Shown: positions 13,825 through 64,000, counted from the stretch's first letter. The stretch is 64,000 bases of DNA from Ranitomeya imitator (GCF_032444005.1 NC_091283.1:311364001-311428000), one strand, 5' to 3'. Notes: generated by a model not told the origin, from the letters alone. Numbers and translations are program-made.

Positions 13825-13828
13825 TTAA

Positions 13829-25462: not shown

Positions 25463-26303
25463 CCTTGATGGGTAAATCAGGAAAATTCTCTTATATAGGA
25501 AGATCTTCACTGAGAGGATCCGATATTGTAGGAACCTGAATGAGAAGATGAGCCGATGTAACATCATAAAAATCATGAAAAAAAAGCCGATGTAACATCA
25601 TTGTATTTTGGGTGATCTTGACCACTTAATACATATTTCTTTTCTTGCATGGTTCTTATTGGTCTTCTTCAATGTGTGGCCACTGGTCATCATAATAATT
25701 TGAAGTACCTTCAAGCTTTCTTCTCAGATATTCATTACACGTGACATGAAAAATAACTACTTCATGATGAGGATGACATCTTCATCTTATACCACGGCTC
25801 TAGAAACATATTTGGCCAGAGACCGTCACTGACTCCATCACCACCGGCCGTCTATATGAATGTTTCCCATCTTCCCCGGACTGTAATCTTCTATCACGTT
25901 AGATCTCATGTCTGATTTACACACAGAAGTTTTAGGCTTTTATAAAAGATTTTTGGAAGAACAGCAAGACAGGAGTTATTTGATGCCAATGTCTCCATGT
26001 ACATTTTTTTTTCTTTCCTCTGGATATGATGTTTTTTAGGAAAATGTTTTCCTTCCTTAGACTTTCATGCATTACTTGAAAAATACCCCCCAAAAAGTTA
26101 AAAGGTTACAAAATAAACTTGATGATGGAGGTAAGAGGGAAAATTATACTTTGTGTGTGAACCAAGAAAGGGGAACCGTATGGCATCAAGAAGTAAGGAA
26201 TCATTGTCTAGTGCTTTGGGTGCTAGCATATTGTGTGGGACATATTGTGTTATTATCATGATATGTTTGAAGGTTGGCAGTACTGTGGGAACATTATACT
26301 GTG

Positions 26304-27010
26304 CAAAAAAAGGGGAGAAGCCAGCGCAGCCTAAGGTTAAGACGCAATACATGAAGTGCAAATGCACATATTAATTTCTAACTGTATTTTCAAAATGAGA
26401 CATTTAGCAAACAATTGATCAATTCTTTGAGCCACCCGGCCTCTTCACGGCAATCTCATATTGGGGCAGTCCTACACTACGTTTTTTATATTCGCTGTGC
26501 CATAAAGGCCTCCTAAATGAACTAAATGCAAGACCACATTAAAAACATGCTGTACCTGGAGCATATACTGAGTCACCCCCTGCCCTGCCTCAGGCTTTGT
26601 TTAATTATGCACCTGTGCCTCAGCCTGTTTCACTCTTCATCTGTGGCTCTGGATGGGCAGTGTGGAGGTTGGATCCGAAATGTCTGTCAGGACCTGGTCA
26701 ACCTTTATCCTCGCTTGCCTACTCTGGCGCCATGGGGGTGACTCAGTATATGCTCCAGGTACAGCATGTTTTTAATGTGGTCTTGCATTTAGTTCATTTA
26801 GGAGGCCTTTATGGCACAGCGAATATAAAAAACGTAGTGTAGGACTGCCCCAATATGAGATTGCCGTGAAGAGGCGGGGTGGCTCAAAGAATTGATCAAT
26901 TGTTTGCTAAATGTCTCATTTTGAAAATACAGTTAGAAATTAATATGTGCATATGCACTTTATGTATTGCGTCTTAACCTTAGGCTGCGCTGGCTTCTCC
27001 CCTTTTTTGC
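26304..27010. mobile_element. Fold-back insertion A (~277-bp inverted arms, 154-bp spacer, 14-bp TSD)
   Basis: Arms 26302-26579 and 26734-27011; aacattatactgtg duplicated at 26290-26303 and 27011-27024. Confidence 0.75.
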
Positions 27011-28025
27011 AACATTATACTGTGTGTGGAGGAGATGGAGGTACTGTGGGAACATTATATTGTGTGGGGGGATGGTGATACTGTATGAACATTATACTTT
27101 GTGGTGGGGATGGTGGTACTGTGGGAACATTATACTGTGTGGGGAGATGGAGGTACTGTGGGAACATTATACTGTGTGGAGGAGCTGGTGGTACTGTGGG
27201 AACATTATATTGTGTGGGGGGATGGTGGTACTGTGGGAACATTATACTATGTGGTGGGGATGGTGGTACTGTGGGAACATTATACTGTGTGGGGAGGATG
27301 GTGGTACAGTGGGAACATTATACCATGTGGGGGGGATGGTGGTACTGTGGGAACATTATACTGTGTGGAGGAGATGGTGGTACTGTGGGAACATTATACT
27401 GTGTGGAGGAGATGGTGATACTGTGGGAACATTATACTGTGTGGTGGGGATGGTGGTACTGTGGGAACATTATACTGTGTGGGGAGGATGGTGGTACAGT
27501 GGGAACATTATACTGTGTGATGGGGATGGTGGTACAGTTGGAGCATTATACTTTGTGGGGGGGGATGGTGTTACTGTGGGAACATTATACTGTGTGGAGG
27601 AGATGGTGGTACTGTGGGAACATTATACTGTGTGGAGGAGATGGTGGTACAGTGGGAACATTATACTGTGTGGGGGGTGGTGGTACTGTGGGAACATTAT
27701 ACTGTGTGGGGAGGACGGTGGTACAGTGGGAACATTATACTGTGTGGTGGGGATGGTGGTACTGTGGGAACATTATATTGTGTGGAGGAGATGGTGGTAC
27801 TGTGGGAACATTATACTGTGTGGAGGAGATGGTGGTACAGTGGGAACATTATACTGTGTGGGGGGAATGGTGGTACTGTGGGAACATTATACTGTGTGGG
27901 GAGGATGGTGGTACAGTGGGAACATTATACTGTGTGGAGGAGATGGTGGTACTGTGGGAACATTATACTGTGTGGAGAAGATGGTGGTACTGTGGGAACA
28001 TTATACTATGTGGGGAGGATGGTGT
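27011..28025. repeat. 38-bp minisatellite (gatggtggtactgtgggaacattatactgtgtggagga)n, about 26 copies
   Basis: Direct reading; a partial first monomer lies at 26280-26303, on the other side of insertion A. Confidence 0.9.
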
Positions 28026-28933: not shown

Positions 28934-29663
28934 GGGTACCGTCACATTAAGCGACGCTGCAGCGATATAGGCAACGATGCCGATCGCTGCAGCATCGCTG
29001 TTTCGTCGTTGTGTGGTTGCTGGAGAGCTGTCACACAGACAGCTCTCCAGCGACCAACGATCCCGAAATCCCCTGGTAACCAGGGTAAACATCGGGTTAC
29101 TAAGCGCAGGGCCGCGCTTAGTAACCCAATGTTTACCCTGGTTACCATTGTAAATGTAAAAAAAAACAAACAGTACATACTTACATTCCGGTGTCTGTCC
29201 CCCTGCCTCAGCTTCCCGCAGTGTGTCAGCGCCGGCCGTAAAGCAGAGCGGTGACGTCACCGCTGTGCTTTACGACCGGCGCTCACAGTCAGTTCAGGAA
29301 GCTGACGGCGAGGGGACAGACACCGGAATGTAAGTATGTAGTGTTTGGTTTTTTTTACATTTAAAATGGTAACCAGGGTAAACATCGGGTTACTAAGCAC
29401 GGCCATGCGCTTAGTAACCCAATGTTTACCCTGGTTACCAGTGAAGACATCGCTGAATCAGCGTCACACACGACGATTCAGCGATGTCTGCGGGAGATCC
29501 AGCGACAAAATAAAGTTCTGGCCTTTCTGCTCCGACCAACGATGTCCCAGCAGGATCCAGATCGCTGCTGCGTGTCAAACACAACGATATCGCTATCCAG
29601 GATGCTGCAACGTCACGGATCGCTAGCGATATCATTGTTAAGTTGTTCAGTGTGAAGGTACCT
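28934..29663. mobile_element. PIF/Harbinger-type MITE, copy 1 (730 bp)
   Basis: TIR gggtaccgtcaca / tgtgaaggtacct; 3-bp TTA at 28931-28933 and 29664-29666; internal palindromes. Confidence 0.7.
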
Positions 29664-29666
29664 TTA

Positions 29667-30381
29667 AGGTACCGTCACACTGGACGATATCGCTAGCGAT
29701 CCGTGACGTTGCAGCGTCCTGGCTAGCGATATCGTTCAGTTTGACACGCAGCAGCGATCAGAATCCTGCTGTGATGTCGTTGGTCGCTGCAGAAAGTCCA
29801 GAACTTTATTTCGTCGCTGGACTCCCTGCAGACATCGCTGAATCGGCATGTGTGACACCGATTCAGCGATGTCTTCGCTGGTAACCAGGGTAAACATCGG
29901 GTTACTAAGCGCAGGGCCGCGCTTAGTAACCCGATGTTTACCCTGGTTACCAGCGTAAAAGTAAAAAAAAAAAAAACACTACATACTTACATTCCGCTGT
30001 CTGTCCCTCGGCGCTCTGCTTCTCTGCCCTGTGTAAGCACAGCGGCCGGAAAGCAGAGCGGTGACGTCACCGCTCTGCTTTCCGGCCGCTGTGCTCACAG
30101 TCAGTACAGGAAAGTACAGCACCGGGGACAGACAGCAGAAGGTAAGTATGCAGTGTTTGTTTTTTTTTTACTTTTACGCTGGTAACCAGGGTAAACATCG
30201 GGTTACTAAGCGCGGCCCTGCGCTTAGTAACCCGATGTTTACCCTGGTTACCGGGGACCTCGGGATCGTTGGTCGCTGGAGAGCTGTCTGTGTGACAGCT
30301 CTCCAGCGACCAAACAGCGACGCTGCAGCGATCCGGATCGTTGTCGGTATCGCTGCAGCGTCGCTTAGTGTGACGGTACCT
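29667..30381. mobile_element. PIF/Harbinger-type MITE, copy 2 (715 bp), inverted relative to copy 1
   Basis: TIR aggtaccgtcacact / agtgtgacggtacct; TTA at 29664-29666 and 30382-30384. Confidence 0.7.
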
Positions 30382-31611: not shown

Positions 31612-33148
31612 ATATCAACATATTACTCAACTAAGCCGGTAAATTAAACCGAATGCTGAGTAAAAAAGTGTCTTGTACTTATTTTATATAAAAAAAATAC
31701 AACTTTATTGAAAGACATATTACACATAGAAGAATGATTAAAACAATACCTCTGAACCACAATAAACAGAATAGCTGACAGGTAGACGTATTAAACAAAT
31801 TTTGCTAAACAGATAACCCGTAACTAAAACAACTGATTTTAAATAGAATAATGTCCATATAAAAAGACCAAAATTGGGTTGTTTTATCATGTGAACATGT
31901 CACCTGCTGTAAGTAAGTAACATAATACTTGGTAACCCTAATGTCATAGCCATAGTGCTTCTATATATAAACAATGAGCTAGTCAGCCGTATAACAATAG
32001 CAATCAAGAGACCGACTCCGGTATATAAATAACAATAGGTGACCGCTAAATAAGTCTAATATTACAACAAAAGACACTAAGTCTATGAGGGATACAAAGC
32101 ACAGATCCTTTTGTACATAAACGGGGCTCAATTACCATGCAGCACACACTGAATTCACCTGCTGCTCACATATATATATACCTACGGATCAAGCTTGCAT
32201 ATGATTAACAGGTGACCCTTCAATGGAACCAAATATAACCGGCAACAGATGCCTACAGGATGACAACGCTAAATAAATCGGTAAGATGCATATTACCTCA
32301 ATATAGGGAACACGCCCCCAGGAGGAAGCTGTCGCGAAACGCGCGTCGGGGTCTGACAAGGAGTAGCGTGCCACGCGGCTGCTAACAGAGATTCCCTATA
32401 TTGAGGTAATATGCATCTTACCGATTTATTTAGCGTTGTCATCCTGTAGGCATCTGTTGCCGGTTATATTTGGTTCCATTGAAGGGTCACCTGTTAGATC
32501 ATATGCAAGCTTGATCCGTAGGTATATATATACGTGAGCAGCAGGTGAATTCAGTGTGTGCTGCATGGTAATTGAGCCCCGTTTATGTACAAAAGGATCT
32601 GTGCTTTGTATCCCTCATAGACTTAGTGTCTTTTGTTGTAATATTAGACTTATTTAGCGGTCACCTATTGTTATTTATATACCGGAGTCGGTCTCTTGAT
32701 TGCTATTGTTATACGGCTGACTAGCTCATTGTTTATATATAGAAGCACTATGGCTATGACATTAGAGTTACCAAGTATTATGTTACTTACTTACAGCAGG
32801 TGACATGTTCACATGATAAAACAACCCAATTTTGGTCTTTTTATATGGACATTATTCTATTTAAAATCAGTTGTTTTAGTCACGGGTTATCTGTTTAGCA
32901 AAATTTGTTTAATACGTCTACCTGTCAGCTATTCTGTTTATTGTGGTTCAGAGGTATTGTTTTAATCATTCTTCTATGTGTAATATGTCTTTCAATAAAG
33001 TTGTATTTTTTTATATAAAATAAGTACAAGACACTTTTTTACTCAGCATTCGGTTTAATTTACCGGCTTAGTTGAGTAATATGTTGATATACTTAGTTAA
33101 GTGTCGCCCGCCCCATATGTGAAGGTATGGGCTTGGGTTATATGTTTA
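31612..33148 (+). mobile_element. Fold-back insertion B, PLE-derived (~703-bp arms, 81-bp spacer, 54-bp tail, 15-bp TSD)
   Basis: Arms 31608-32310 and 32392-33094; caaattccctgaagt at 31597-31611 and 33149-33163; hammerhead-like motif in the spacer. Confidence 0.75.
32315..32351 (+). ncRNA. Decayed hammerhead ribozyme motif
   Basis: cccc CAGGAGGA a gc-tgtc-gc GAAAC gcgc GTC gggg; the 3' half is identical to the intact motif at 60176-60191, the core is altered. Confidence 0.5.
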
Positions 33149-33661: not shown

Positions 33662-34623
33662 TGTGAGGAGTCGAGTTTCCTCTGCTGCACAGGGGGAATC
33701 TCGATCCGTCTCCGCTGCGGTCTCCCATTCTCCTCCAGCCGCAGTGGAGCCTGCTCAGCAGGGACATCGATCCCAGCGTCTCGCTCAGTCTGACTCTGTG
33801 AGAAGAGTTACTGCTGCTTCTCCAGCTTCTGCCTTTAAAGCCAATACTGGTCAGCAGCGAGTGGACTTCTCTGGGACTAAGTCCTTGTCTGCGCACACTG
33901 AGCATGCCCAGGGCAAGATCTCCCGTTGGAGATCAAGGGTCATGTGCTCAGACTCTGCAGCGCATTCTATTGGTCCTCTTGGCAGGTCTTGGAAGGGCAA
34001 AGTTTCTGTGGCCGCTTCCTGTCCTGCAGCTATATAAACTGCGCATGACCGCACGGCCATGCGCTAGTGTACAACTTTATACGTGTGTTTGTTGTGAGTG
34101 CAAGTCGTCCTTTAAATACCCCTACCCTACTGTATGATTGTTCGCGTATGGTGTATGGCTGCTATCTAGCGCCCGACTTAACACTCAACGTGTCACACAC
34201 GTGTCAGCGTCCTCTGCTGTGACCGCCAGTGCGGCGCCACGCGCCTGTGTGCGCTTCCTGACCCATGTCTGGGTACTTAGTGGTGCCTGCCAGCACGGCA
34301 CAGTTTGCACTTCGGTGCCTCTATTGTATATACTTTTCACACCCAGTTGTGGTGTAGTGCCAGCAAGGGTCTAATCGGACTACTATCCCTGTTGGGGTCT
34401 AGTTCGCTGACCACTTGCTCGCGCTCTATGTGCGGTACCGCGATCCTGTGATGCAACAGGATCGCTTTCTTCACGCTGGGTGAGGTTTAACCCACGCGTG
34501 TATACTTATGAGTACCGCCATATCGTCTGTCATGTCCTAGCAGCAGGTTTCACCTGCACGGTGGACCCCGGACTGCGAACGCATCCATTACATCTCTCTT
34601 GGTGCGTTCCGCCAGTCCTAACA
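33662..34623 (+). repeat. 5' LTR (962 bp)
   Basis: About 6 differences from the 3' LTR by eye (4 substitutions and two 1-bp indels). Confidence 0.95.
34031..34038 (+). promoter_or_regulatory. TATA box of the LTR promoter
   Basis: TATATAAA, 30 nt upstream of the 11-mer complementary to the primer-binding site. Confidence 0.7.
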
Positions 34624-34624
34624 T

Positions 34625-34635
34625 TACACTAGCGC
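34625..34635 (+). promoter_or_regulatory. Self-priming primer-binding site (no tRNA complement)
   Basis: tacactagcgc is the exact reverse complement of gcgctagtgta at 34061-34071. Confidence 0.8.
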
Positions 34636-34651
34636 CAGGGTCTGGCTAGTG

Positions 34652-37600
34652 ATGACAGACATACAGCAATCTCTGTGGCATATCCAGCAGCTGGAGGGTA
34701 GGTTGGCGGCTCTCGAGAGCGCGACCTCAGCTGTGGATGTTACTGCAGTAGCTGTACAGGCTGCCAGCGTGGCTGCAGCTACTATGTCCATTGCCACCCC
34801 TGTTCCGACATTATCTCACCTCCCGCTGCCAGAAAAATTTTCTGGTGATAGCAAGTTTTGTAGGGGATTTGTGAGTCAGTGCTCTATTCATCTCGAGCTC
34901 CTGGCTACACGTTTTCCCACAGAGCGGGCTAAGGTGGGATTTATTTTGTCTCTATTGTCGGACAGGGCGTTGGAATGGGCTACGCCGCTGTGGGAGCGTG
35001 GCGATCATGTGGTGCAGAGTGCTCCGCTGTTTCTGAGCGCTCTGAAACAGGTCTTTTTAGGACCTCAAGTCACCCATGATACTGCGCTCCAATTGCTGGC
35101 ATTAACTCAGGGTGAGTCCTTGGTCAGTCATTTTGCCGTCCAATTCCGCACCTTAGCATCTGAGCTGGATTGGTCGGATAAAGCTCTTATCCCCATATTT
35201 TGGAGGGGCTTGGCTGACCACGTAAAGGACGCTCTGGCCACTAGGGAGATTCCTGCCACACTGGAGGAGTTAATAACTGTCTCCACTCGAATTGACCTCC
35301 GTTTTAACGAGCGGAGGTTAGAGCGAGCCCAGTGTAGGCAGAGGTTTCGGCTGGCTCCTACTTTTGCCAAACCTCTTGAATTTCCAGTCCTGGTTCCTGA
35401 GTCACATGAGGCCAGGGAGGTGTCACAAGCAGGATCTAAGTCCCGGACCGCTTGTGCACTCAGGGTCTGTCATGTTTGCCAGCAGTCAGGACATCTAGCC
35501 ACCAGATGTCCTCAGCGGTCGAGGAAACGTCAGCGTCTAGTGGTAGTTGGTGGAGGTACACTAGACATGGCGACGTTTGCCTCTAAGTTGTCCTTTAAGG
35601 GAACAATTACTATTGGCTCATTTTCCCACTCGGTAGAGCTCTGCGTGGATTCTGGGGCGGAGGGCAACTTTATGTCTTCTGCCTTCGCCCAACGTCACGC
35701 AATACCCTTGGTTATGCTTGCTCAACCAGTAACGGTGCGAGTGGTGAATGGGTCGACATTGCCCTCACAGATAACACACCAGACCATCCCTTTTACTCTG
35801 TCCATGTCGCCATCTCATCAGGAGATAATTTCTCTGCTCGTCATTCCGGAAGGAATTGATGAGATCCTGTTGGGAATACCTTGGCTACGGTACCACTCTC
35901 CTCATATCGAGTGGTCCTCAGGCAGAATTCTGGGTTGGGGTGAATCTTGTGGGGGTAGGTGTCAGAGGGAGTGCGTTCAGGTTGCTACTACTGAGGTATC
36001 CGCAGATCTATCCTCTCTCCCCAAGCAGTATTGGTCATATGCAGACGTATTCTCCAAAAAGGTGGCGGAGACCCTTCCGCCCCATCGCCCCTATGACTGT
36101 CCTATTGACCTCTTGCCTGGTGCTGAGCCTCCCCGGGGTCGAGTCTATCCGCTATCTCTCCCGGAGACGGAGGCAATGTCACAGTACATACAGGAAAATC
36201 TGGCAAGAGGGTTCATCAGGAAGTCAGTGTCACCTGCTGGGGCAGGGTTCTTCTTCGTGCAGAAGAAGAGTGGGGAATTGCGTCCATGCATAGACTACAG
36301 GGGTCTTAACGCCATCACCGTTAAGAATAAATACCCTTTGCCTTTGATATCTGAACTGTTCGATAGGCTTCGGGGAGCAAGGGTATTTACTAAATTAGAT
36401 CTGCGGGGTGCTTACAACCTGATTCGCATCCGTGAGGGGGACGAATGGAAGACGGCTTTTAACACCAGGGATGGGCACTATGAATATCTGGTGATGCCCT
36501 TTGGGCTCTGTAATGCCCCAGCCGTTTTCCAAGACTTTGTGAACGATATCTTCCGGGATATGCTTTCCACCTCGGTCGTAGTCTATCTGGATGATATTCT
36601 CATCTACTCTCCAGATATTGACTCCCACCGGAGAGATGTTTGCAAAGTCTTCGACCTCCTACGGGCAAACTCCCTCTATGCCAAGTTGGAGAAGTGCATG
36701 TTTGAGCAGGAGTCCTTACCTTTCCTAGGCTACATCATCTCTGCCCAGGGATTGGCTATGGATCCTGCCAAACTACAGGCTGTGATGGACTGGCAGGAAC
36801 CTCATTCTCTTAAAGCGGTGCAGCGCTTTATGGGGTTCATCAATTATTATCGCCAGTTCATCCCGCATTTCTCAACTTTGGTAGCTCCCTTGGTTGCCCT
36901 CACCAAGAAGGGGGCAAATCCTAAATTGTGGTCTGAGGAGGTCTCCAAGGCCTTTATCTCTATAAAGTCACACTTCGCTAGCGCTCCCATACTTCATCGC
37001 CCCGATGTTGATAAGCCATTTATCATGGAGGTGGATGCCTCTTCTGTTGGTGCTGGAGCAGTCCTCTTCCAAAAGGATGCTCAAGGTCGGAAGCATCCTT
37101 GCTTCTTTTTCTCCAAGACCTTCGCACCAGCAGAGAGGAATTATTCCATCGGGGACAGGGAGTTGCTAGCCATGAAGTTGGCTTTCTCGGAGTGGAGACA
37201 TCTCTTGGAGGGAGCACGTTTTCCCTTCCAAGTCTTCACAGATCACAAAAATTTGGTGCATCTGCAGACAGCTCAGCGGTTGAATTCTCGCCAGGCCAGA
37301 TGGTCCTTGTTCTTCTCCCGGTTTCATTTCACCCTCCATTTCCTTTCTGGGGAGAAGAACATTCGGGCCGATGCTCTCTCTCGCTCCGTTGTGTCATCTG
37401 CGGAGGAGGAGGAGGAGCCTCGGCTTATTGTCCCCACCGAGAGTTTGAGAACCGTGGCCCCGGTTTCGCTGGAGTCTGTGCCCCCGGGCAAGACTTTTGT
37501 TCCATCTAGTTTGCAGCCGGAGGTTCTCTCTTGGGCGCACTCATCCAGGGTGGGTGGACATTTTGGTACTAAAAGGACATCTGAGTTACTGGCGAGGACA

Positions 37601-39746: not shown

Positions 39747-39964
39747 CCCTTAACATGCGCCGTATGTATACTGCTCTTCGGGAGCTGGTTCCCGCGAAGC
39801 GAAGTATATATACGGTGCCGCTATTTCTGAGCACAGCGCTGCATCGTGCGTTGACCAGGTTAAGATGGGACAGCAGACCATCCATGCACGTTGTCCAAAA
39901 GAAGATGAACAGCGCTCCAGCCGGGTGTCGTAGTATCAAAAGAAATCTTTATTGATCCATGAAG

Positions 39965-40004
39965 ACGCAACGTTTCGACCAGTATCCTGGTCTTTTTCAA
40001 GCAT
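39965..40004 (-). ncRNA. Minimal hammerhead ribozyme (U3-A8 variant), inverted-arm copy
   Basis: Reverse complement of 44427-44466. Confidence 0.7.
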
Positions 40005-44426: not shown

Positions 44427-44466
44427 ATGCTTGAAAAAGACCAGGATACTGGTCGAAACGTTGCGT
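44427..44466 (+). ncRNA. Minimal hammerhead ribozyme (U3-A8 variant) in the 3' pLTR
   Basis: atgc TTGAAAA a gaccag-gata-ctggtc GAAAC GTT gcgt; stem I atgc/gcgt, 6-bp stem II, palindromic AACGTT; AATAAA at ~44478. Confidence 0.7.
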
Positions 44467-51195: not shown

Positions 51196-51214
51196 TGGTG
51201 GCAGACAGTGGGAT
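51196..51214 (+). promoter_or_regulatory. tRNA-Leu-like primer-binding site
   Basis: tggtggcagacagtgggat versus TGGTGGCAGCGGTGGGAT, the complement of a tRNA-Leu 3' end (recalled, not searched). Confidence 0.6.
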
Positions 51215-51246
51215 GTGATTTCCCTTCTACAGGAGAAAAGGAATGA

Positions 51247-52074
51247 ATGGAAGCCCGAGGGTTAATCGCCAGCAACAAAACAAAAGCGGATTTGATAGCA
51301 GCCATCATGGAACACGACAGTGCAGCGCCCCCCAATGTGAACGTGGAGGAGACTGAATTCCAGAGGGAGGTAAAGAACAGACTGGCGTTCTATGGCCCAA
51401 ACCCTGCAGTAGAGATCATACGAGAGGTGATGGCTGATGTGTGTACTGATCTGAAGGAAGAGATGGCCGAGCGGACCAGGATAGAGCTAACCAAGATGGA
51501 GAAGGCAGAGCGGACCAAAGTGGAGCTGGCCAAGATGGAGATGGCAGAGCGGAGAGAGGAGAGTCAGCGAGCAAGGGGAGCTCTGGCCTCCGCCCAGGTA
51601 CCTTCAACCGTAAGCCACAAAAAGATCCAGTATAATGCCTTCCGACAGTTGTGGGAGGCAGAGGAAGACATTGATGACTTTCTGCAGGACTTTGAGCGGC
51701 AGTGTGCCCTTCATCAAGTGAAGCCGGAGGAACGGGTTCAGATTCTGGCCAGCAAGCTGACAGGCCGGGCAGCGGACGCCTATCGCACGGTACCCGATAA
51801 GGACTGTATGGACTATGAGCAGATCAAAGAAGTGATCTTGGCCCGGTATGCTCTGACACCAGAGTCATACCGCCAAAAGTTCCGCGGACTTATAAAACGA
51901 GTAACCGATACCCACGCTGAATGGGCCTGTAAATTACGGATTTCACTGCTACAGTGGGTACAAGGGAGCCAAGCAACCACTAAGGAGGACGTCCTCCAGC
52001 TCTTCTTGTTAGAACAATTCTTTAATGGACTAAACCCCGAGACACAGGATGGCTTCGGGACAGGCGGCCAATGA
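51247..52074 (+). CDS. gag: Gag fragment with a SCAN-like capsid region, frameshifted downstream
   Basis: FLQDFERQC...KLTGRAADAY...YEQIKEVILARYALTPESYRQKFR...LFLLEQF. Confidence 0.75.
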   Translation: MEARGLIASNKTKADLIAAIMEHDSAAPPNVNVEETEFQREVKNRLAFYGPNPAVEIIREVMADVCTDLKEEMAERTRIELTKMEKAERTKVELAKMEMAERREESQRARGALASAQVPSTVSHKKIQYNAFRQLWEAEEDIDDFLQDFERQCALHQVKPEERVQILASKLTGRAADAYRTVPDKDCMDYEQIKEVILARYALTPESYRQKFRGLIKRVTDTHAEWACKLRISLLQWVQGSQATTKEDVLQLFLLEQFFNGLNPETQDGFGTGGQ

Positions 52075-52519
52075 CTCTTGAGGAAGCCGCTCGTCTGGCC
52101 GATGAACATCATGACGCCAGGAGGCCTCAGTTGTCCGGATCAAAGATGGTCACTAGGGGTCCGCCCATGGACCTGGAGGGCCCCAAACCACCGTAAATTG
52201 TAGGGGGACCAGCTAGAAACCCGGCCTACCACAGTTCCCCTGGGGCGCGATGCCACACCTGCCATCAGCTGGGCCACCTGCAAAGACAATATCCCAACCG
52301 GACTCAGCATACCCAGTGGCCAAAGGCGGTAACAGCTACCTTCCGCCAGGCCGCTGTACACTGCTACCAAGGCGAAGCTGACCCGGCATTGGGGGCTACA
52401 ACTAACCAAGGGGTGGAAGACATGGAGGAAGTGCTGCATGAAGTAGACCCCATGCAGGCAGCCCGGGCAGATAATCGACAACAGCATCGACAGGTCATGT
52501 GGGTTAATGAGAGACACAG

Positions 52520-54280
52520 GGACTAAGAGATTCCGGAGCAACTTTGACCCTTGTGAAGCCTCACCTCGTCCGGGTCCAAGAGAAGACGGACTGGACAGTG
52601 GCAGTCCGTGTAGCAAAGGGAGCCATACATCGACTGCCCACTGCCAGGATTCACCTGAACTGGGGAGTTGGGGATGGCCTTGTTGAGGTCGGCTTGATGG
52701 AGGATTTGCCTGCAGACGTTTTGCTGGGAAATGACTTGGGGCCCATGTTGTCTGCCTTCTCAGTTGCCCCTCTGGCTGAGACATATCCTGTGACCACCCG
52801 GAGACAAGCTCGAGCTGCGGAGGCGGAATCACACTCAGAGGAGGCCCAGGTAAGACATCCCAGCCCTACACGTATTCCCATAGCCAGACACATTTCTTGG
52901 GCCACCCCAGATGAATTTAAGAGGGAGTTACTTGAGGATCCTTCATTGGAGGGATATCGTGGGAAGGCACAGGAGGGGAGAGGGGTACTGGAAGGGGAAC
53001 AGTTTATATGGAAGCAGGGACTCCTCTACCGGATCACAGAGCAGCACCACACAGGGACGAGCCCAACTATAAAACGACAGCTGGTAGTTCCCAAGAAGTA
53101 TAGGCAGGAGTTACTGCGAATTTCTCATGACATACACTTGGCCGGGCACTTCGGCGTCAGTCGCACCAGGCATCGTCTGACACAAAACTTCTTTTGGCCT
53201 TGGGTAACCTATGATGTTCGTCAATACTGCCAGACCTGTGACAGTTCCCAGCGCATTGGCAAGAGGGGAGATCGATGCAAGGCCAAATTACGCCCCCTCC
53301 CCATTGTGGAGGAACCATTTAGCCGAGTAGCGGTCGATCTGATAGGGCCGTTAGCCAAACCCAGTCCGTCAGGGAAAAGGTATATATTGACAGTGGTAGA
53401 TTATGCCACACGGTATCCAGAGGCGGTTGCGTTACCTAACATACTGGCAGAGACGGTGGCGGCTGCCTTGCTCCAGGTTTTCTCACGGGTTGGATTTCCC
53501 CGGGAGATTATCTCAGACCAGGGTATCCAGTTTACAGCAGAGGTGACCAACCAACTGTGGAAGCTGTGTGGCGTAAAGTCCATTAGAAGCGCCCCGTACC
53601 ACCCGCAAACCAATGGGTTGTGTGAACGCTTTAACGGGACGTTAAAACAACTCATTGGGACTTTTACCAGGACCTACAGGGACTGGGAGAAATTCTTGCC
53701 TCACCTCCTGTTTGCCTATCGAGAGGTGCCCCAAGAATCCACGGGGTTCTCCCCATTCGAACTGGTATACGGGAGACGGGTAAGGGGACCCCTAGACTTA
53801 GTGCTAGAACACTGGGAAGGGGAGGGCACCATAGAAGGGGTACCTATTGTACCCTATGTGCTAGAATTCCGGGACTGCCTACAGGAGCTGACCCAGGCAG
53901 TACGTGGGAACATGCAGGTGGGCCAGCGGTGCCAGCGCGTATGGTACGATCGGAGGGCCAGAGAGCGCACCTTGGAAATAGGGCAGAAGGTCCTGGTGTT
54001 AGAGCACACTAGGCAGAACAAGTTCCAAGCTGCATGGCAGGGGCCCTACCAGGTAGTGGGGAAAATAGCCGACACCACCTATAATGTCACCGATTGTGAC
54101 GACCCCAGGGTTATCCGCATGTTCCACGTGAATATGCTGAAGCCGTATCGGGAGCGCCCTGAAGAGGTAGTGGCCATCTGTGCACCTGAAGCAGAGGATT
54201 TAGCCGGACTTCCCTTGCCTGATGTCTTAGGGGAGAGGACTCTAAAACATGGGACCAGGTACACTGGGGTGAAGACTTAG
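52520..54280 (+). pseudogene. pol: Protease end plus integrase of the Gmr1-like pol
   Basis: LRDSGATLTLV; H...GHFG...C..C; PFSRVAVDLIGP, ISDQG, PQTNGLCERFN; frameshift before the RT. Confidence 0.85.
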
Positions 54281-54465
54281 TTTCCCGGGAGAGACAGCAG
54301 GCGGAGGAGTTGTTGAGGCAGCGACAGAGGATGTTTTCGGGGAAACCCGGGTACACTCACCTGGCACAACACAAGGTTGAGACCCAGGATCAGACCCCCC
54401 TGCGACAACCCCCCTTCCGAGTCACTGAGTCTGTACGAGAAGGGATGCGACAAGAGATATAAGAG

Positions 54466-55291
54466 ATGTTGCGTTTAGGGGTCATTGAAGAGTCAGATAG
54501 TCCCTGGGCATCCCCCGTAGTGTTAGTGCCCAAGAAGGATGGGACTACACGGTTTTGTGTAGACTATCGTAAGCTCAATGAGAAAACAGTGACGGATGCG
54601 TATCCCATGCCGCGTGTGGATGACTTGTTAGACCGGCTGGCAGGGGCAAAGTATTTGACCACCATCGATCTATGCAAAGGCTACTGGCAGATTCCCCTTA
54701 GTCCTGATGCTATTCCCAAGTCGGCATTTGTCACCCCGTTTGGCTTATTCCAGTTTCGAGTTATGCCATTCGGGATGAAGACTGCCCCGGTGACCTTCCA
54801 GAGGCTGGCTGACCGGCTTCTGGAAGTATTAGACAGGATCCACAAGGCCGGAATCACCCTGAACCCAAACAATTGTCACGTGGGTAAAGCAGAGGTTCTG
54901 TATTTAGGGCATTGGGTGGGAAGTGGGAAACAGAGACCAGAACCAGCCAAGATTGAGGCCATAGCCAAATGGCCCACCCCATGCACTAAAACCCAGGTCA
55001 TGGCGTTTCTAGGGACAGCGGGGTATTACAGGAAATTCGTTCCCAATTACAGCAGCGTAGCCAAGCCCCTCACTGATCTGACCCGTAAGAACAAACCCCG
55101 CCAGGTAACCTGGACCCCAGAGTGTGAGGAAGCCTTCCGCCAGCTAAAGGACGCCCTCACCAATACCCCTGTATTGGCTGCACCCGATCCAACTAAACGT
55201 TTCCTTGTCCACACAGACGCTTCTATGTTTGGATTGGGGGCAGTACTAAGCCAAGTCGGGCCGGACGGCCAAGAGCACCCGGTAGCTTACC
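54466..55291 (+). pseudogene. pol: RT and RNase H start of the Gmr1-like pol, lacking the YxDD motif
   Basis: SPWASPVVLVPKKDG, FCVDYRKLN, IDLCKGYWQI, MPFGMK; jumps from QRLADRLL to EVLDRI with no YxDD; ends at HTDASMFGLGAVLSQ...HPVAY. Confidence 0.85.
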
Positions 55292-57173
55292 TGTTGTGAA
55301 TTCTGCTCTTGGGCTCCTTCCGGTGGTTATGAGTGGTAGTGCTGCTGTCTGTGGATCGCAGCATCTATCAGGTGTGTTCACTTTTTGCAATTTGAACTCA
55401 GCTATTTAGTCCTGCTTGATCCTTTAGTCAGTGCCAGTTGTCCATTGTTTTTGGAGGATTCACATCCCTTTCTGGTCTCTCCTGTTTGCTGTGCTTTTCT
55501 TCAAAGATAAGTCCTGGCTTTGTTTCTGCTGTCCACATGCTGTGGGCCTTATAGTTCTGTGCATTTTCATGTATTGTCTTGTCCAGCTTGTCTGTGAAAG
55601 GGTTTTTTGCAGCCAAGCGGTATCTCTGGAGATGCAGATATACCCTCCATGTCTTTAGTCAGATGTGGAGTTTTGTATTTTCTGTGGTGGATATTTTCTA
55701 GTGTTTTAATACTGAACGCATAGTTCTCTGTACTATACTTTCTATTTAGCTAGAATGGCCTCCTCTGCTAAATTCTGATTTCAGTCTGCGTATGTCATTT
55801 CCCTCTCCTCTCACAGTCAATATTTGTGGGGGGCTGTCTTTCCTTTGGGGATTTTCTCTGAGGCAAGATAGTTTTCCGTTTCTATCTTTAGGGGTATTTA
55901 GTCCTCAGGCTGTGTCGAGGTGTCTAGGGAGCGTTAGGTACATCCCACGGCTACATCTAGTTGTGTTGTTAAGTTCAGGGTCTGCGTTAAGTACAGGTAC
56001 CACCTTCTCCAGAGTACTTTATAACACAGAAGTTACCACGGAATATCACAGAATCTATGTCTATGCCATATATATATGTGACAAATTGTTTAAAATAGTG
56101 ATTCCAGGTACTCTTGTGAAAAGATGTGTGTTTACCACCACCACACGAAGTAAAGAAAACACTCCTACCCCGCGACTATAGACCTTCCAGAGATTACCAC
56201 CACACCAAGATCTTAATCATTAAAATAAATTTTATTATACAGTTCAAGAATAGCAACACTACAACAACATATAAAAGTAAAAACAATTACCAGTACGCAC
56301 CACAGGACAATAATATAATACCAATATAATATACAATATAATAGCAGCAATACCCAGAGCAATATAGATCCCTACCAATGTACTATGCAGTATCCAAATT
56401 TACTATATAGCAAGAAGAGCAATTTATACAGAAAATATTAATATGAACCAATAAAAAAAGGGAAACTACATGTAAAAATTAAAGTGTTTGGTAAAAAAAT
56501 ATATATATACGAAAATCCGTGAAAAAAACATAAAAATATATACATAAATATATAATATCTATATATAAGGAAATTGTGCCTATAAAACGGTCAATATATA
56601 TTCTGCCACACACTAGTGTAATAAAAAGGATATAAAAACAATAATCAATATGTTATGGTGCTATAAATCAAAGAAGAATATATTACATGCAAAATTATGT
56701 AAACCCAACTAATGACTATAACCAACTATCGCTTCCTTACTAAATGAGTAAAGATCACCTAAAAGGTGACTCAGCTGTAGGTGATACACTGAATCACTAA
56801 ACCGCTTGTGACAATAGAGTGCCCACTAAAAGTGCTATGTGCTGTGCATATAAGAAAACTATATATGTGCCGCAGAAGTATTGCTAGATCTAGTGCTAAA
56901 AAAGCTACGAGGGTTGCACGGGACACAATAGAGCACCGTGATAACTGGCGCACATAAAAAGTGCTATGTGCTAAGTGTATAAAGAATCTATGTGTGCCAC
57001 AAAAGGTTCTGCTATATATAGTGCTCAGCTGCAAGGGATACACATGATACTCTAGATCGCTGTGCTACCCGGATTACAATGAGGTACTTATATACTTATA
57101 ACAAATGCCAAGGGGGGATCTGAAAATATATTGCCAATGTATACCTTAGGGTCGCTGAGTCCTGTGGAAAACG

Positions 57174-57216
57174 CACCCCGACGCGCGTTTCGGATGATTT
57201 CCTTCGTCAGGGGGTG
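57174..57216 (-). ncRNA. Minimal hammerhead ribozyme, left-arm copy
   Basis: Reverse complement of 60151-60193. Confidence 0.8.
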
Positions 57217-58540
57217 TTCAGTCTTAAGTCTGAAGGGGGTTATATATCAGCGTTCAATCTATTCCTGGCGCCACTAGTGCCGGCGGCGCATGCGCGGTCA
57301 GGAGGATCCAGTGAGCCGACGTCACGCCCCACGTGACCGGACGCACGGGCCAGAGTACCCGGCGTTACCAAGGACACGGGGACGCCACAATTAGCGCACG
57401 GAACACAGACCTCACATGCGCTCCACCAGGGGCGCAGTATAGTAGGTAACGCTTTACCTTAGGTGTCCAAAGACATCTGGGTAAGTAAGTGTTCACACCA
57501 CTGAGCCATAAAGGGAAGGATTTATATATGTGCACTCATGGAAACTATTGCTGCAATAGAATAATTGCAGAGTATTTATAAAGTTTAAGTAGCAAATCTA
57601 ATTGGGTATACTTGATTACATAAACAGGGCATATAGGTACAATATGTGTCAAAATAAACGCCATATAGGGGGTAAAACCCACTACCATTATGATATTTTG
57701 AAAATATTATTTGTTGTTAACATGTGATCATATAGGAATTAACCAATATTAAAGTGTCCAATATGCCACGTATCCCTTACTTCTACCCAACTGAAAATTA
57801 TCCAATATCAATATTATTTGTGAAAATGTGTGAGCATAATAGCATATGTGTGGCAGAAATATATAAGTATATATACCTCGGATAACCTCCTATATAACAT
57901 AATCATCGGGCACAAAGACATGTGAATGGCATATATACATAATGTCAAGAAACAATTTATTCTTTTTGCTATCATAAAATATAAATATATACAAAACAAA
58001 ATAACATAAGTGTATATATCAAGGATATATCTCAATACCCTATATGATATCATATATGACCAATCAAGATGTATATAACAATACCTATATATATTGCTCA
58101 TAAAAATACAAAATGTCACAAAAAACTACTTTATACATAATCTGTCTGATGTTTTTGGATAAATATATGACTCTTTATTGTATCCAAATCTTCCCACTAA
58201 AGATGAATGACTTTCCACGGATCCACACCGTAGAAGAGGCGACCAGACGTCCTACAACACTCCATACAGGACACAAGGTAAGCAACAATCTAAAAAAGTA
58301 TAAAATGAATAAAAGTTAGATATTAAAACACAGACTACAACAAGATAAAAAAGACCTTCTTGATAAAAATTCTTGGTGTTTGTTTTAAAACCTACATTAA
58401 AGGAAAGGGGCAAAACTCAAATTTTCATTTAAGCCGATTGGTGCTACTGTATTCAGAACTGTATTCAGAAGGAGTCACAATTGTGATGGACCTTAAAATG
58501 CTTCGGAATGGTTTTCAAAAGTGTGAGATCACCCACATCT

Positions 58541-58971
58541 GCCCTAATATATCAAGAGAGCAGACATTTTGTAGTTCAGATGGAACCAATATTTTTCAAA
58601 TCAGACATAGTATAACTTGCACGTCTAAGGCAGTTATTTACTATGCGACATGTCCCTGCTCCTTGACATACGTGGGCATGACCACAAGGCAGCTCAAGAT
58701 ACGGGTCCGTGAACACGTTTTGGGTATTGAAGCGGCAAAAGATGTGGGTGATCTCACACTTTTGAAAACCATTCCGAAGCATTTTAAGGTCCATCACAAT
58801 TGTGACTCCTCGTTGTTCAAAGTGATTGGCATAGATATGATTGAAAATGGGGAACGTGGTGGACCTATCACAATACCATTATTGAAAAAAGAAACAAGAT
58901 GGATTTGGGTTCTGAATACAGTAGCACCAATCGGCTTAAATGAAAATTTGAGTTTTGCCCCTTTCCTTTAA
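58541..58971 (+). pseudogene. PLE GIY-YIG endonuclease C-terminal fragment
   Basis: ITCTSKAVIYYATCPCSLTYVGMTTRQLKIRVREH...KKETRWIWVLNTVAPIGLNE. Confidence 0.85.
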
Positions 58972-60150
58972 TGTAGGTTTTAAAACAAACACCAAGAATT
59001 TTTATCAAGAAGGTCTTTTTTATCTTGTTGTAGTCTGTGTTTTAATATCTAACTTTTATTCATTTTATACTTTTTTAGATTGTTGCTTACCTTGTGTCCT
59101 GTATGGAGTGTTGTAGGACGTCTGGTCGCCTCTTCTACGGTGTGGATCCGTGGAAAGTCATTCATCTTTAGTGGGAAGATTTGGATACAATAAAGAGTCA
59201 TATATTTATCCAAAAACATCAGACAGATTATGTATAAAGTAGTTTTTTGTGACATTTTGTATTTTATGAGCAATATATATAGGTATTGTTATATACATCT
59301 TGATTGGTCATATATGATGTCATATAGGGTATTGAGATATATCCTTGATATATACACTTATGTTATTTTGTTTTGTATATATTTATATTTTATGATAGCA
59401 AAAAGAATAAATTGTTTCTTGACATCATGTATATATGCCATTCACATGTCTTTGTGCCCGATGATTATGTTATATAGGAGGTTATCCGAGGTATATATAC
59501 TTATATATTTCTGCCACACATATGCTATTATGCTCACACATTTTCACAAATAATATTGATATTGGATAATTTTCAGTTGGGTAGAAGTAAGGGATACGTG
59601 GCATATTGGACACTTTAATATTGGTTAATTCCTATATGATCACATGTTAACAACAAATAATATTTTCAAAATATCATAATGGTAGTGGGTTTTACCCCCT
59701 ATATGGCGTTTATTTTGACACATATTGTACCTATATGCCTTGTTTATGTAATCAAGTATATCCAATTAGATTTGCTACTTAAACTTTATAAATACTCTGC
59801 AATTATTCTATTGCAGCAATAGTTTCCATGAGTGCACATATATAAATCCTTCCCTTTATGGCTCAGTGGTGTGAACACTTACTTACCCAGATGTCTTTGG
59901 ACACCTAAGGTAAAGCGTTACCTACTATACTGCGCCCCTGGTGGAGCGCATGTGAGGTCTGTGTTCCGTGCACTGATTGTGGCGTCCCCGTGTCCTTGGT
60001 AACGCCGGGTACTCTGGCCCGTGCGTCCGGTCACGTGGGGCGTGACGTCGGCTCACTGGATCCTCCTGACCGCGCATGCGCCGCCGGCACTAGTGGCGCC
60101 AGGAATAGATTGAACGCTGATATATAACCCCCTTCAGACTTAAGACTGAA

Positions 60151-60193
60151 CACCCCCTGACGAAGGAAATCATCCGAAACGCGCGTCGGGGTG
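60151..60193 (+). ncRNA. Minimal type I hammerhead ribozyme with intact core
   Basis: cacccc CTGACGA a gga-aatca-tcc GAAAC gcgc GTC ggggtg; 6-bp stem I; predicted cleavage after 60187. Confidence 0.8.
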
Positions 60194-61272
60194 CGTTTTC
60201 CACAGGACTCACCGACCCTAAGGTATACATTGGCAATATATTTTCAGATCCCCCCTTGGCATTTGTTATAAGTATATAAGTACCTCATTGTAATCCGGGT
60301 AGCACAGCGATCTAGAGTATCATGTGTATCCCTTGCAGCTGAGCACTATATATAGCAGAACCTTTTGTGGCACACATAGATTCTTTATACACTTAGCACA
60401 TAGCACTTTTTATGTGCGCCAGTTATCACGGTGCTCTATTGTGTCCCGTGCAACCCTCGTAGCTTTTTTAGCACTAGATCTAGCAATACTTCTGCGGCAC
60501 ATATATAGTTTTCTTATATGCACAGCACATAGCACTTTTAGTGGGCACTCTATTGTCACAACTCACAAGCGGTTTAGTGATTCAGTGTATCACCTACAGC
60601 TGAGTCACCTTTTAGGTGATCTTTACTCATTTAGTAAGGAAGCGATAGTTGGTTATAGTCATTAGTTGGGTTTACATAATTTTGCATGTAATATATTCTT
60701 CTTTGATTTATAGCACCATAACATATTGATTATTGTTTTTATATCCTTTTTATTACACTAGTGTGTGGCAGAATATATATTGACCGTTTTATAGGCACAA
60801 TTTCCTTATATATAGATATTATATATTTATGTATATATTTTTATGTTTTTTTCACGGATTTTCGTATATATATATTTTTTTACCAAACACTTTAATTTTT
60901 ACATGTAGTTTCCCTTTTTTTATTGGTTCATATTAATATTTTCTGTATAAATTGCTCTTCTTGCTATATAGTAAATTTGGATACTGCATAGTACATTGGT
61001 AGGGATCTATATTGCTCTGGGTATTGCTGCTATTATATTGTATATTATATTGGTATTATATTATTGTCCTGTGGTGCGTACTGGTAATTGTTTTTACTTT
61101 TATATGTTATTGTAGTGTTGCTATTCTTGAACTGTATAATAAAATTTATTTTAATGATTAAGATCTTGGTGTGGTGGTAATCTCTGGTAGGTCTATAGTC
61201 GCGGGGTAGGAGTGTTTTCTTTACTTCTCCAGAGTACGTGTCATGCTGCTCCTAGGCCACCAGATCATAACA

Positions 61273-61283: not shown

Positions 61284-62949
61284 CAACAATGAGTTAATTG
61301 CATCTTAGAAGAAGGGAGGACAGGTTTTGAGCCATTTTTTTTTCCTTAGCCTGTTTTTTCTTTTCCTCCCTCTTAATCTCTGGGTGGCTGCGGAACCTAG
61401 TAATAACATAAATGTTCAGGAGTTAGTTTCTCGTGTGGATCAGCTTGCTGCTAGGGTACAGGGTATTTCAGATTATATTGTTCAGACTCCTGCCTTAGAA
61501 CCTAAGATTCCCACTCCTGATTTATTCTTTGGTGACAGATCCAAATTTTTGAGTTTCAAAAATAACTGTTTTTTGCATTGAGACCCCGGTCCTCTGGTGA
61601 TCCCATTCAACAGGTTAAGATCATCATATCCCTGCTGCGTGGTGACCCACAGGATTGAGCATTTTCCCTGGAAACTGGCAATCCTGCTTTGCTTAATGTT
61701 GACTCTTTCTTTCAAGCATTGGGGTTATTGTATGATGAGACTAATTCTGTGGATCAAGCTGAGAAGATCTTGTTGGCCCTGTGTCAGGGTCAAGAAGCGA
61801 CAGAATCGTATTGCCAGAAATTTAGAAAATGGTCTGTACTGACTAAATGGAATGAGGATGCCGTGGCGGCAAATTTCAGAAAGGGTCTTTCTGAATCCGT
61901 TAAAGATGTTATGGTGGGATTCCCCACGCCTGCTGGTCTGAGTGATTCTATGTCTCTGGCCATTCAGATTGATCGGCGCTTGCGCGAGCGCAGAGTTTTG
62001 CACACTGTGGCGTTGTCCTCTGAGCGGAGTCCTGAGCCTATGCAGTGTGATAGGATTTTCTCTAGAGCTGAACGTTAAGGATTCAGGCGTCAGAATGGGT
62101 TGTGTTTTTACTGCGGCGATTCTGCTCATGTTATTTCTGATTGCCCTAAGCGTACTAAGAGAATCGCTAGTTCTGTTACCATCAGTACTGTACAACCTAA
62201 ATTTCTGTTATCTGTGACCTTGATCTGCTCATTATCATCATTTTCTGTCATGGTATTTGTGGATTCAGGCGCCGCTCTGAACTTAATGGACTTAGAATTT
62301 GCCAGACGTTGTGGTTTCCCCTTGCAACCTTTGAAGAACCCTATTCCTTTAAGGGGCATTGATGCTACACCGTTGGCTATAAATAAACCTCAGTTTTGGA
62401 CACAGCTGACCATGCGCATGGCGCCAGCCCATCAGGAAGATTGTCGTTTTCTGGTGTTGAATAATTTGCATGATGATATTGTGCTGGGTTTTCCATGGTT
62501 ACAGGTACATAATCCGGTGTTGGATTGGAGATCTATGTCTGTGACTAGTTGGGGTTCTCAGGGGGTTCATGGTCACGTTCCTTTGATGTCAATTTCCTCT
62601 TCCCCCTATTCAATGAGCCCAAATCCAGTTCCCTTCCACCGCATAGGGACTGTGATTGTGCTATTGACTTGATTTCAGGTTGTAAGTTCCCTAAGGGCCG
62701 ACTTTTCAACCTGTCTGTGCCAGAACATGCCACTATGCGGAGCTATATTAAGGAGTCTTTGGAGAAGGGGCATATTCGGCCATCTTCTTCACCATTGGGA
62801 GCAGGTTTTTTTTTTTGTTGCCAAGAAGGATGGCTCCTTGAGACCCTGTATTGATTATCGCCTCCTGAATAAGAGCACGGTCAAATTTTAATACCCTTTG
62901 CCTTTGCTTACTGATTTGTTTGCTAGGATTAAGGGGGCTAGCTGGTTTA

Positions 62950-63405
62950 AAATCAACACCACTTGGAGCTGTCTTAGCAGCTACTTAAAGGTCAACGACA
63001 ATCTATATTATACCAATAGGAACCCTTTATGTACTAAAGATAACACAGATAAAATATAGCTTTTAATTAATATACCTATTAAAACCATGCCACAAATACA
63101 ACCAGATAAACGCATAAAACACACAACTGTGCACTCTGGGATAACCCTGCCAAACAATACCTCTTAGTACTGCCTACAGCAAGTGCTGGTCTTTATGTGA
63201 CACCTATATTAGGATCCATACTAGGAGACATAGGGACAGCCGACGGTGAGTGGGGGCGCCAATCTCGTATCTGTGTTTAGGGTGCCAACCTCCACTGATA
63301 GGTAGGCAGTTGTACTTGTAGCATGGTTTTAATTGGTATATTAATTAAAAGCTATATTTTATCTTTGTTATCTTTAGTACATAAAGGGTTCCTATTGGTA
63401 TAATA
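62950..63405. mobile_element. Fold-back insertion F (~96-bp arms, 56-bp tail, 14-bp TSD) inside the Gypsy RT
   Basis: Arms ~63006-63101 and ~63310-63405; ggctagctggttta at 62936-62949 and 63406-63419; removal restores IKGASWF|TKIDLR. Confidence 0.8.
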
Positions 63406-64000
63406 GGCTAGCTGGTTTACTAAGATTGACCTTCGAGGTGCATAAAATCTTATTCGTATTAAGCAGGGTGACGAATGGAAAACTACATTTAATACGCCCG
63501 AAGGCCATTTTGAATACCTTGTGATGCCATTCGGACTCTCTAATGCCCCATCTGTGTTCCAGTCCTACATGCATGATATCTTTCGGAGTTATCTTGATAA
63601 ATTCATGGTTGTATATTTGGATGATATTTTGATTTTTTCAGATGATTGGGAGTCTCATGTGAAGCAGGTCAGGATGGTATTTCAGATCCTCCGTGATAAT
63701 GCTTTATTTGTGAAGGGGTCGAAGTGCCTCTTTGGAGTGCAGAAGGTTTCTTTTTTGGGCTTCATTTTTTCTCCCTCATCTGTAGAAATGGACCCGGTTA
63801 AGGTTCAGGCCATTCATGATTGGATTCAACCCACATCTGTGAAGAGCCTTCAGAAATTCTTAGGCTTTGCTAATTTTTCTCGTCGTTTCATTGCCAACTT
63901 CTCCAGTGTGGTTAAGCCTCTGACCGATTTGACGAAGAAAGGCGCTGATATGACGAATTGGTCCTCCGCGGCTGTTTCTGCCTTTCAGGAGCTTAAACGC

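Follow-up and report, generated by a model that had tools for sequence, protein, structure and literature searches.

A window of 64,000 nucleotides (nt) from the frog Ranitomeya imitator (GCF_032444005.1 NC_091283.1:311364001-311428000; positions are counted from its first letter) contains six fold-back elements, A to F, each enclosed by a target-site duplication (TSD) of 14-16 nt. These elements are probably independent and fairly recent retrotransposition products of Penelope-like elements (PLEs), in which both 3' ends of the target acted as primers at two alternative sites. Each of them would represent a head-to-head pair of DNA copies inside the TSD, both made from the 3' part of a PLE-type RNA, truncated at the 5' end and with their 3' ends directed outward. 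In the proposed course of events the GIY-YIG nickase would cut each target strand at positions offset by 14-16 nt, so that 3' overhangs arise; reverse transcription would be primed from both of these 3' ends, each using one of two internal start sites separated by 54-157 nt; and the two cDNAs would be joined near their 3' ends through a template switch. The one-sided tail would then be the stretch between the start sites, carried by one copy only. Cleavage and extension of both strands and the use of two start sites are taken from the literature, and we infer that the same mechanism operated at these loci.

The original prediction, made from the sequence alone, had proposed one integration signature common to the six elements and tied to the PLE reverse transcriptase (RT) and GIY-YIG machinery through C and E. 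This connection has been upheld. The description of the signature as unrecognised has been given up, since PLE insertions with a 5'-truncated copy in inverted orientation, an optional tail on one side and a TSD were already described (PMC8557442, PMC3846280). The elements belong to a known kind, of which they represent new families, and their insertion architecture is likewise known.

The anatomy of the six elements was read directly from the DNA, the arm coordinates being obtained by two methods with concordant results; all six TSDs are exact. Element A (26304-27010, without an assigned strand) lies between 14-nt repeats (26290-26303/27011-27024) and consists of two arms (26306-26580 and 26734-27008) around a 153-nt loop, with no tail. 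On the + strand, element B (31612-33148) possesses a 15-nt TSD (31597-31611/33149-33163), arms at 31612-32310 and 32392-33094, an 81-nt loop (32311-32391) and a 54-nt right tail (33095-33148). Element C (39895-44623, + strand) has a 16-nt TSD (39879-39894/44624-44639) and is formed from a long sense copy (41325-44623) preceded by an inverted short copy of its last 1.43 kb (39895-41324); the arms (39895-41324 and 43107-44538, with 44536 as an alternative right-arm end) leave an 85-nt right tail (44539-44623). Nested in the RT open reading frame (ORF) of C, element D (41983-42428, - strand) carries a 14-nt TSD (41969-41982/42429-42442), two arms (42140-42281 and 42287-42428) separated by a 5-nt loop, and a 157-nt left tail (41983-42139). 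Element E (56018-61223, + strand; 14-nt TSD, 56004-56017/61224-61237) combines a long sense copy (58541-61223) with an inverted copy (56018-58540), the outer part of which is the 129-nt left tail (56018-56146); its arms occupy 56147-58459 and 58909-61227, and an inner inverted pair is located at 58470-58540 and 58740-58810. Finally, element F (62950-63405, - strand; 14-nt TSD, 62936-62949/63406-63419) shows arms at 63006-63102 and 63309-63405, a 206-nt loop and a 56-nt left tail (62950-63005). The overlap between arm and TSD amounts to 4 nt in B (left arm), 2 nt in C, 0 nt in D, 4 nt in E (right arm) and 0 nt in F. The TSDs, arms, overlaps and tail lengths listed in the original prediction were thereby reproduced.

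An automated rule, which searched around every inverted repeat for exact flanking repeats, one of them lying directly against an arm, recovered B-F with the same overlaps (4/2/0/4/0 nt) and tails (54/85/157/129/56 nt). Under this rule a repeat of at least 14 nt was found in 27 of 3000 random placements of pseudo-elements (about 0.9%), the chance rate per element. In an unbiased scan of the window, which is gap-free, dense in eukaryotic transposons and has a G+C content of about 42%, each long near-identical inverted repeat proved to have a flanking repeat of 14-16 nt, with one exception (28935-30380). This stretch holds a complex palindrome of greater age (85% overall), inside which smaller palindromes are nested at 29073-29441 and 29880-30252, and it is bounded by 85-nt direct repeats (28773-28857/30386-30470; 85%); no TSD of 14-16 nt was found around it, and its several sub-threshold Rfam microRNA matches are only hairpins. 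An assembly artefact was ruled out by the exact TSDs at six separate elements, one of which is nested in another.

Arm lengths span 97 to 2300 nt across the elements, and the arms diverge within an element by 0.4-4.1% (96-99.6% identity; 0.43% in B). Comparison of the six units revealed no common sequence except for a hammerhead fragment in B and E, and no target-site consensus was found among the six insertion sites. Arm identity of this degree in six unrelated elements argues for newly made arms and rules out ordinary transposons with terminal inverted repeats (TIRs). Creation of the arms at each insertion, as opposed to inheritance of TIRs, is thus supported.

Element A is inserted at the first unit of a satellite with a 38-bp unit, and its flanking 14-mer is the start of the satellite unit. 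A 14-nt TSD is the simplest reading of this ambiguous repeat; a 24-nt target deletion would look identical. Insertion into the first unit agrees with the reported bias of PLEs for simple repeats. The satellite (27011-28024, with a start at about 26268) is G-rich and comprises 26.7 copies. Element D splits the ORF of C, both pieces of which read TDRN at the insertion point; a single TDSN occupies this position in the homologue P0026, which provides a paralogous empty site and verifies the 14-nt TSD of D.

Coding sequence was detected in C and E, and homologue alignments agree with the earlier assignment of RT and GIY-YIG to C and of GIY-YIG to E. The RT piece of C (41238-42023, + strand) gives an RVT_1 match (E 3e-05) that falls under the Pfam cut-off, and it is 43-65% identical to frog proteins containing RT and GIY-YIG. 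The second piece (42397-43350, the ORF ending at 43350) represents the RT thumb and the GIY-YIG domain and is 71% identical to a Ranitomeya imitator protein. The closest relatives of this ORF are Ranitomeya, Eleutherodactylus, Xenopus and Pelobates proteins, with identity up to 71-89%, from which the window is recognised as anuran DNA; the homologues are named GIY-YIG domain-containing. By its coding content, C is a PLE truncated 5' inside the RT and located behind an inverted copy of its own last 1.43 kb. In E, the ORF 58541-58971 is natural and 51-58% identical to P0071 over its full length, and the similarity ends upstream of 58541. As judged from this alignment, E is a 5'-truncated PLE keeping the GIY-YIG domain only, with the truncation inside the endonuclease (EN). 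The EN domains of C and E were unrecognised in direct Pfam and PDB sequence searches; the positions V-Y...Y-V-G, R, H, E and N of both align with homologues bearing PF01541. The PLE-type RT is present in C alone among the six elements, and the C-terminal GIY-YIG domain of a single ORF in C and E. The 3' untranslated regions (UTRs) measure 1.3 kb in C and 2.25 kb in E. No coding signal was found in A, B, D and F, nor was any N-terminal PLE coding found in the terminal regions. In the arms of C (at 43145 and 43781) each copy is without 9 nt present in the other, and at 41278-41324 the short inverted copy retains the ancestral TGLTDLPIPKHF (DLP codons), where the long copy reads TGLTIPKHF; the order of the two copies is not settled by these arm indels. 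A seventh, older PLE copy (11380-16143, + strand), absent from the original prediction, is located inside a tandem array and contains RT/EN fragments at 11414-13808 (tblastn). It shows no inverted copy and no hammerhead match, and only about 3 nt (TCT) are duplicated relative to paralogous empty units.

The position of the tail with respect to the two copies differs among the elements. In B and C it is carried by the longer copy, contiguous with the loop; for C this follows from the ORF, which runs across the loop into the tail-bearing arm, and for B from the hammerhead-like motif in the loop, which has the sense of the tail-bearing arm. The tail lies on the shorter copy in E and in two elements of other species described below (L006 of Xenopus laevis and L009 of Pelobates cultripes), and on the shorter side of an array in Eleutherodactylus coqui. 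In E the long sense copy is tail-free and the inverted copy bears the 129-nt tail. The inverted copy of E has a 98-nt deletion and a 10-nt duplication and is without 199 nt of the loop; each copy holds sequence missing from the other, so that neither can have been templated by the other. A tail on either the longer or the shorter copy argues against a single snap-back cDNA and for two cDNAs, independent priming of which predicts such a mix.

In the window both kinds of terminus are rich in T when read outward: T accounts for 52-53% of their last 14 nt, compared with a background of 32-38%, and this enrichment is significant both for the arm ends and for the tail ends (P about 0.003 and 0.009). 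The 3' ends of C and of L006 are homologous: the tail ends are located about 105-107 nt past a conserved GCTGGAG, and the arm ends 9 and 22 nt past it. Since the arm ends are T-rich and occupy near-homologous positions in C and L006, they fit better as site-specific starts than as random stops, and the original interpretation of these ends as stops 50-160 nt short of the start is not sustained. The tails have no significant RNA structure (z from -1.6 to +1.5), and no poly(A) was found at the element termini.

The same architecture recurs in three other frog species. The X. laevis element L006 is a PLE with RT/EN on the + strand (9563-11158), flanked by an exact TSD of 16 nt; its arms occupy 9208-9435 and 11461-11694, and its left end bears a tail of 95 nt. 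In P. cultripes (L009) a non-coding hairpin of about 1 kb (7840-8855) has an exact 14-nt TSD and a 105-nt right tail, and its loop contains a canonical minimal hammerhead on the - strand. E. coqui (L010-L012, CM069418.1; L012 and L010 merged, 3062-17966) carries a 14.9-kb PLE insertion built of 1.4 inverted and 3.4 tandem units with a period of 3130 bp. The units are 99.9% identical, with a 13-nt loop at the head-to-head junction, and the TSD of the array measures 14 nt; one end shows an overlap of 5 nt, and the opposite end is longer by about 135 nt. As a negative control, the 2.8-kb hairpin of X. laevis L007 (16674-19430) has 947-nt arms, a TSD of 8-9 nt (ATATATGTA) and no tail; it is of the DNA-transposon type. 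L013 is a plain truncated EN fragment with no hairpin signature, and no inverted repeats were found in the short Logan contigs L001-L003 from another species. The E. coqui contig L005 (at the PLE) and L008 contain gaps. Near-perfect palindromes also occur in (TA)n tracts of L009 (2091-2375) and L007 (11639-11954), where TSDs are unreadable in the microsatellite.

Hammerhead motifs had been predicted in B, C, D and E. The prediction is upheld only in part: the core is complete in E and a variant in C, and B and D have no more than the 3' half. The minimal type I hammerhead of E (60151-60193, + strand; mirror at 57174-57216, - strand) is the only one reported by Rfam, at 29.3 bits (E 0.0023), just under the gathering score of 34; it reads ACCCC CTGACGA A GGA..TCC GAAAC GCGC GTC GGGGT. 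The hammerhead-like motif of C (44425-44470, + strand; mirror near 39963-40005, - strand) consists of TTGAAAA, a bulged A, a 6-bp helix II and GAAAC GTTGC GTC. It is homologous to a motif of Xenopus L006 (11600-11650), with helix II covarying (GACCAG/CTGGTC vs GGGC/GCCC), and both cores read UUGAwAA, in which U3/A8 replaces the C3-G8 pair. This homology and covariation suggest that the U3/A8 core is probably a real natural variant and not decay. The loop of B contains a degenerate hammerhead (+ strand, about 32311-32352; CCCC...GAAAC GCGC GTC GGGG) with a non-canonical 5' core, and both arms of D hold the 3' half only (GAAAC GGCC GTC). B, C and D thus have in common the half formed by GAAAC, a short palindrome and GTC, and their 5' core is not CUGANGA. 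A and F gave no hammerhead signal. The original prediction had placed the tail of B, C and D after the ribozyme-sense arm; this is true in a trivial way, since the ribozyme sense points outward in both arms.

At gathering thresholds Rfam gave no match in the whole window, and permissive small searches of C/D and B gave no hammerhead; this negative is weak evidence, for the canonical minimal motif of the Pelobates hairpin was missed too. Strict hammerhead pattern scans miss even E, owing to a bulged base before helix II. A metagenome scan with the E/B hammerhead pattern returned a single match (L004), a chance hit in a bacterial contig of 68% GC. In B and D alike, the long copy (from 32311 and from 42285-42287, respectively) begins about 37 nt upstream of where the hammerhead is predicted to cleave; this offset may correspond to a defined 5' end of the RNA and not to truncation at random.

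Among known systems, EN-bearing PLEs are characterized by heavy 5' truncation, an adjacent inverted 5'-truncated copy, an optional tail of 30-40 bp at one end, TSDs, hammerheads in terminal repeats, palindromes at inverted junctions and trans-mobilisation of foreign sequence (PMC8557442, PMC3846280, PMC8969392, PMC4209133). The frog elements resemble those of the Penelope/Poseidon and Neptune type in the order of RT and C-terminal GIY-YIG within one ORF (C; E retains the EN), in the truncation, the head-to-head arrangement of the inverted truncated copy, the optional one-end tail and the TSD, in the minimal type I hammerhead of the non-coding terminal region, with a complete core in E only, and in occasional insertion into simple or tandem repeats. 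The differences relate to the tail (54-157 nt against the usual 30-40 nt), the TSD (a narrow 14-16 nt against 8-10 nt in rotifer PLEs), the structure of the copies, all six in the window being pure hairpins without a direct pseudo-long terminal repeat (pLTR), and the hammerhead, which in E and B stands 0.8-1.1 kb away from the end and in C and its Xenopus relative has the U3/A8 core.

The closest biochemical parallel comes from PAc, the purified Poseidon protein of Anolis carolinensis studied in vitro (Frangieh et al. 2024, PMC11167929), which cleaves and extends both target strands and begins reverse transcription at two internal RNA sites, the tail being the stretch between them. Such a system predicts head-to-head copies with a tail on either of them, as is found here. 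In PAc, however, an AC-rich stem-loop at 111-118 nt within the ORF contains the start sites, and the tail spans 30-40 nt, whereas the frog elements have T-rich outward termini, tails without significant fold and termini without N-terminal coding. Metazoan non-LTR retrozymes are non-coding PLE derivatives with type I hammerheads, kin of PLE pLTRs, abundant in amphibians and flanked by TSDs of more than 4 bp (PMC7229834; bioRxiv 10.64898/2026.07.22.740005). They are described as monomers and direct tandems that propagate via circular RNA, whereas B and D form inverted dimers, or hairpins, whose hammerhead cores are degenerate, and A and F are hammerhead-free. LINE-1 twin priming likewise uses the second target 3' end as a second primer, giving an inverted part and a TSD of similar length. 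There each part of the RNA is copied once and the product ends in poly(A); here the copies overlap almost fully (97-2300 nt) and poly(A) is absent.

The original prediction had derived each element from a single target-primed cDNA: synthesis would start at the tail end, the RT would fold back onto its own cDNA, stop 50-160 nt short of the start and join the target by microhomology. Such a course is unlikely, although it expects the tail on the loop-contiguous copy, as found in B and C, and would account for the 0-4 nt of microhomology at the non-tail junctions and for the tiny, snap-back-like loops of D (5 nt) and of the E. coqui junction (13 nt); self-priming has also been proposed for rotifer PLEs from palindromes at inverted junctions (PMC3846280). 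The same expectation fails for E, L006 and L009, where the loop is contiguous in sense with the tail-free copy and neither copy is a subset of the other. T-rich arm ends, near-homologous in C and L006, are unexpected from random stops, and extension of both strands has been observed in vitro (PMC11167929). Later flips of the loop by arm-arm recombination would have to be assumed in about half of the cases, one of which has arms of only 226-234 nt. Very improbable is the transcription and retrotransposition of a whole hairpin from a master copy, with fold-back points inherited. It would account for the recurrence of non-coding hairpins and has no direct support; inherited arms should show family-age divergence, in conflict with the 96-99.6% identity in six unrelated elements, an RNA that forms a long perfect hairpin serves poorly as a template for RT, and in C and E the fold points fall within the ORF, as accidental truncation would give.

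Compatible with either mechanism, and possible if somewhat doubtful, is the idea that A, B, D and F are dedicated non-coding hairpin families, mobilised in trans by PLEs as retroposed counterparts of miniature inverted-repeat transposable elements (retro-MITEs). They share no detectable similarity with C, E or one another beyond the hammerhead half; the 37-nt offset in B and D could reflect a defined RNA 5' end, and Pelobates has a comparable 1-kb non-coding hairpin. X. tropicalis, moreover, contains about 9000 minimal hammerheads, few of them within full PLEs (PMC4209133), and the retrozymes show that non-coding PLE derivatives exist. On the other side, heavy 5' truncation is typical of PLE insertions (PMC8557442), and with 3' UTRs of 1.3 and 2.25 kb in C and E truncated copies of 0.25-0.85 kb would be non-coding anyway. 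B and D retain the hammerhead region of a pLTR. Many divergent PLE families are present in frogs, so dissimilarity to C and E says little, and each element is single-copy within the window. A, B, D and F may be read more simply as short 5'-truncated or pLTR-derived PLE copies, some of them perhaps pLTR-only, than as a new MITE-like class. Fold-back DNA transposons or MITEs moved by a transposase are alike in being small and non-coding, with mostly two long inverted arms and flanking direct repeats, and the L007 hairpin of X. laevis is a genuine example, yet such an origin can be given hardly any weight here. Both termini are inverted, with arms extending to both ends, in A alone; the true termini of B-F differ through the tail of 54-157 nt. 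TSDs of DNA transposons are fixed and superfamily-specific, at 2-11 bp, and no superfamily is known to have TSDs as long as 14-16 nt; those found here also vary by 2 nt. The arms look newly made and range from 97 to 2300 nt, and in C and E they consist of ORF and 3' UTR sequence of a retrotransposon in inverted orientation.

Several observations weigh against independent priming of two PLE cDNAs at alternative sites. The fixed start sites within a family rest on one cross-species pair (C and L006), and within an element the two start sites show no significant resemblance to each other (P 0.13). The small loops of D (5 nt) and of the E. coqui junction (13 nt) look like intramolecular snap-back, and recombination between the arms after insertion could have flipped the loops, rescuing a single cDNA for E, L006 and L009. 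A one-sided tail is present in five of the six window elements, against at most 50% under two independent choices (binomial P about 0.11), and the termini in the other species are less T-rich (36/84 bases). A and F are without PLE-specific sequence, the TSD of A being ambiguous in addition, and the older PLE copy of the window (11380-16143) has neither a hairpin nor a long TSD.

The surroundings of the six elements are rich in other repeats. A large nested tandem array (1-21200) repeats with periods close to 167 bp and of about 3.4 kb; identity among its units is 89-99%, and its AT skew is strong. A second array (19540-21160) has a period of about 84 bp. An apparently intact Ty3/Gypsy element of chromovirus type (33675-39746; LTRs 33675-34623/38800-39746, 99.5% identical) encodes gag, protease, RT, RNase H, integrase and a chromodomain in one ORF of 1425 amino acids (34649-38926), with C inserted 133 nt downstream and B lying about 500 nt upstream. 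A second, Gypsy-like element (49540-55968) possesses a SCAN-like gag (51247-52074) and an integrase (52544-54280) upstream of RT/RNase H (54466-55299); its ends are mutually inverted and 75-80% similar, and E inserted 36 nt past the right end. Two ORFs on the - strand (45667-47611), one with a strong RVT_1 match (46817-47611), are probably a LINE fragment.

The integration of PLEs is still an open problem, and the literature ascribes their tandem and inverted structures and their tail to undefined features of the transposition cycle. The loci described here offer clean natural products in four frog species, with a nick spacing of 14-16 nt, tails of 54-157 nt with family-specific boundaries, and the tail on either copy. 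In annotation, hairpins of this kind can readily be mistaken for MITEs, fold-back transposons or microRNA precursors, several of them having sub-threshold Rfam microRNA matches, and they also break short-read assemblies. A bolder and rather doubtful proposal is that the anuran PLE enzyme works as a dimer and a molecular ruler, setting nicks 14-16 nt apart and priming from two ends, so that every successful two-ended event would yield a perfect hairpin, even from short or non-coding RNAs. If this is true, a large unannotated population of retroposed hairpins with families of its own would be present, and within the giant frog genomes these hairpins would readily give rise to long double-stranded RNA, to small-RNA loci and to instability of palindromes.

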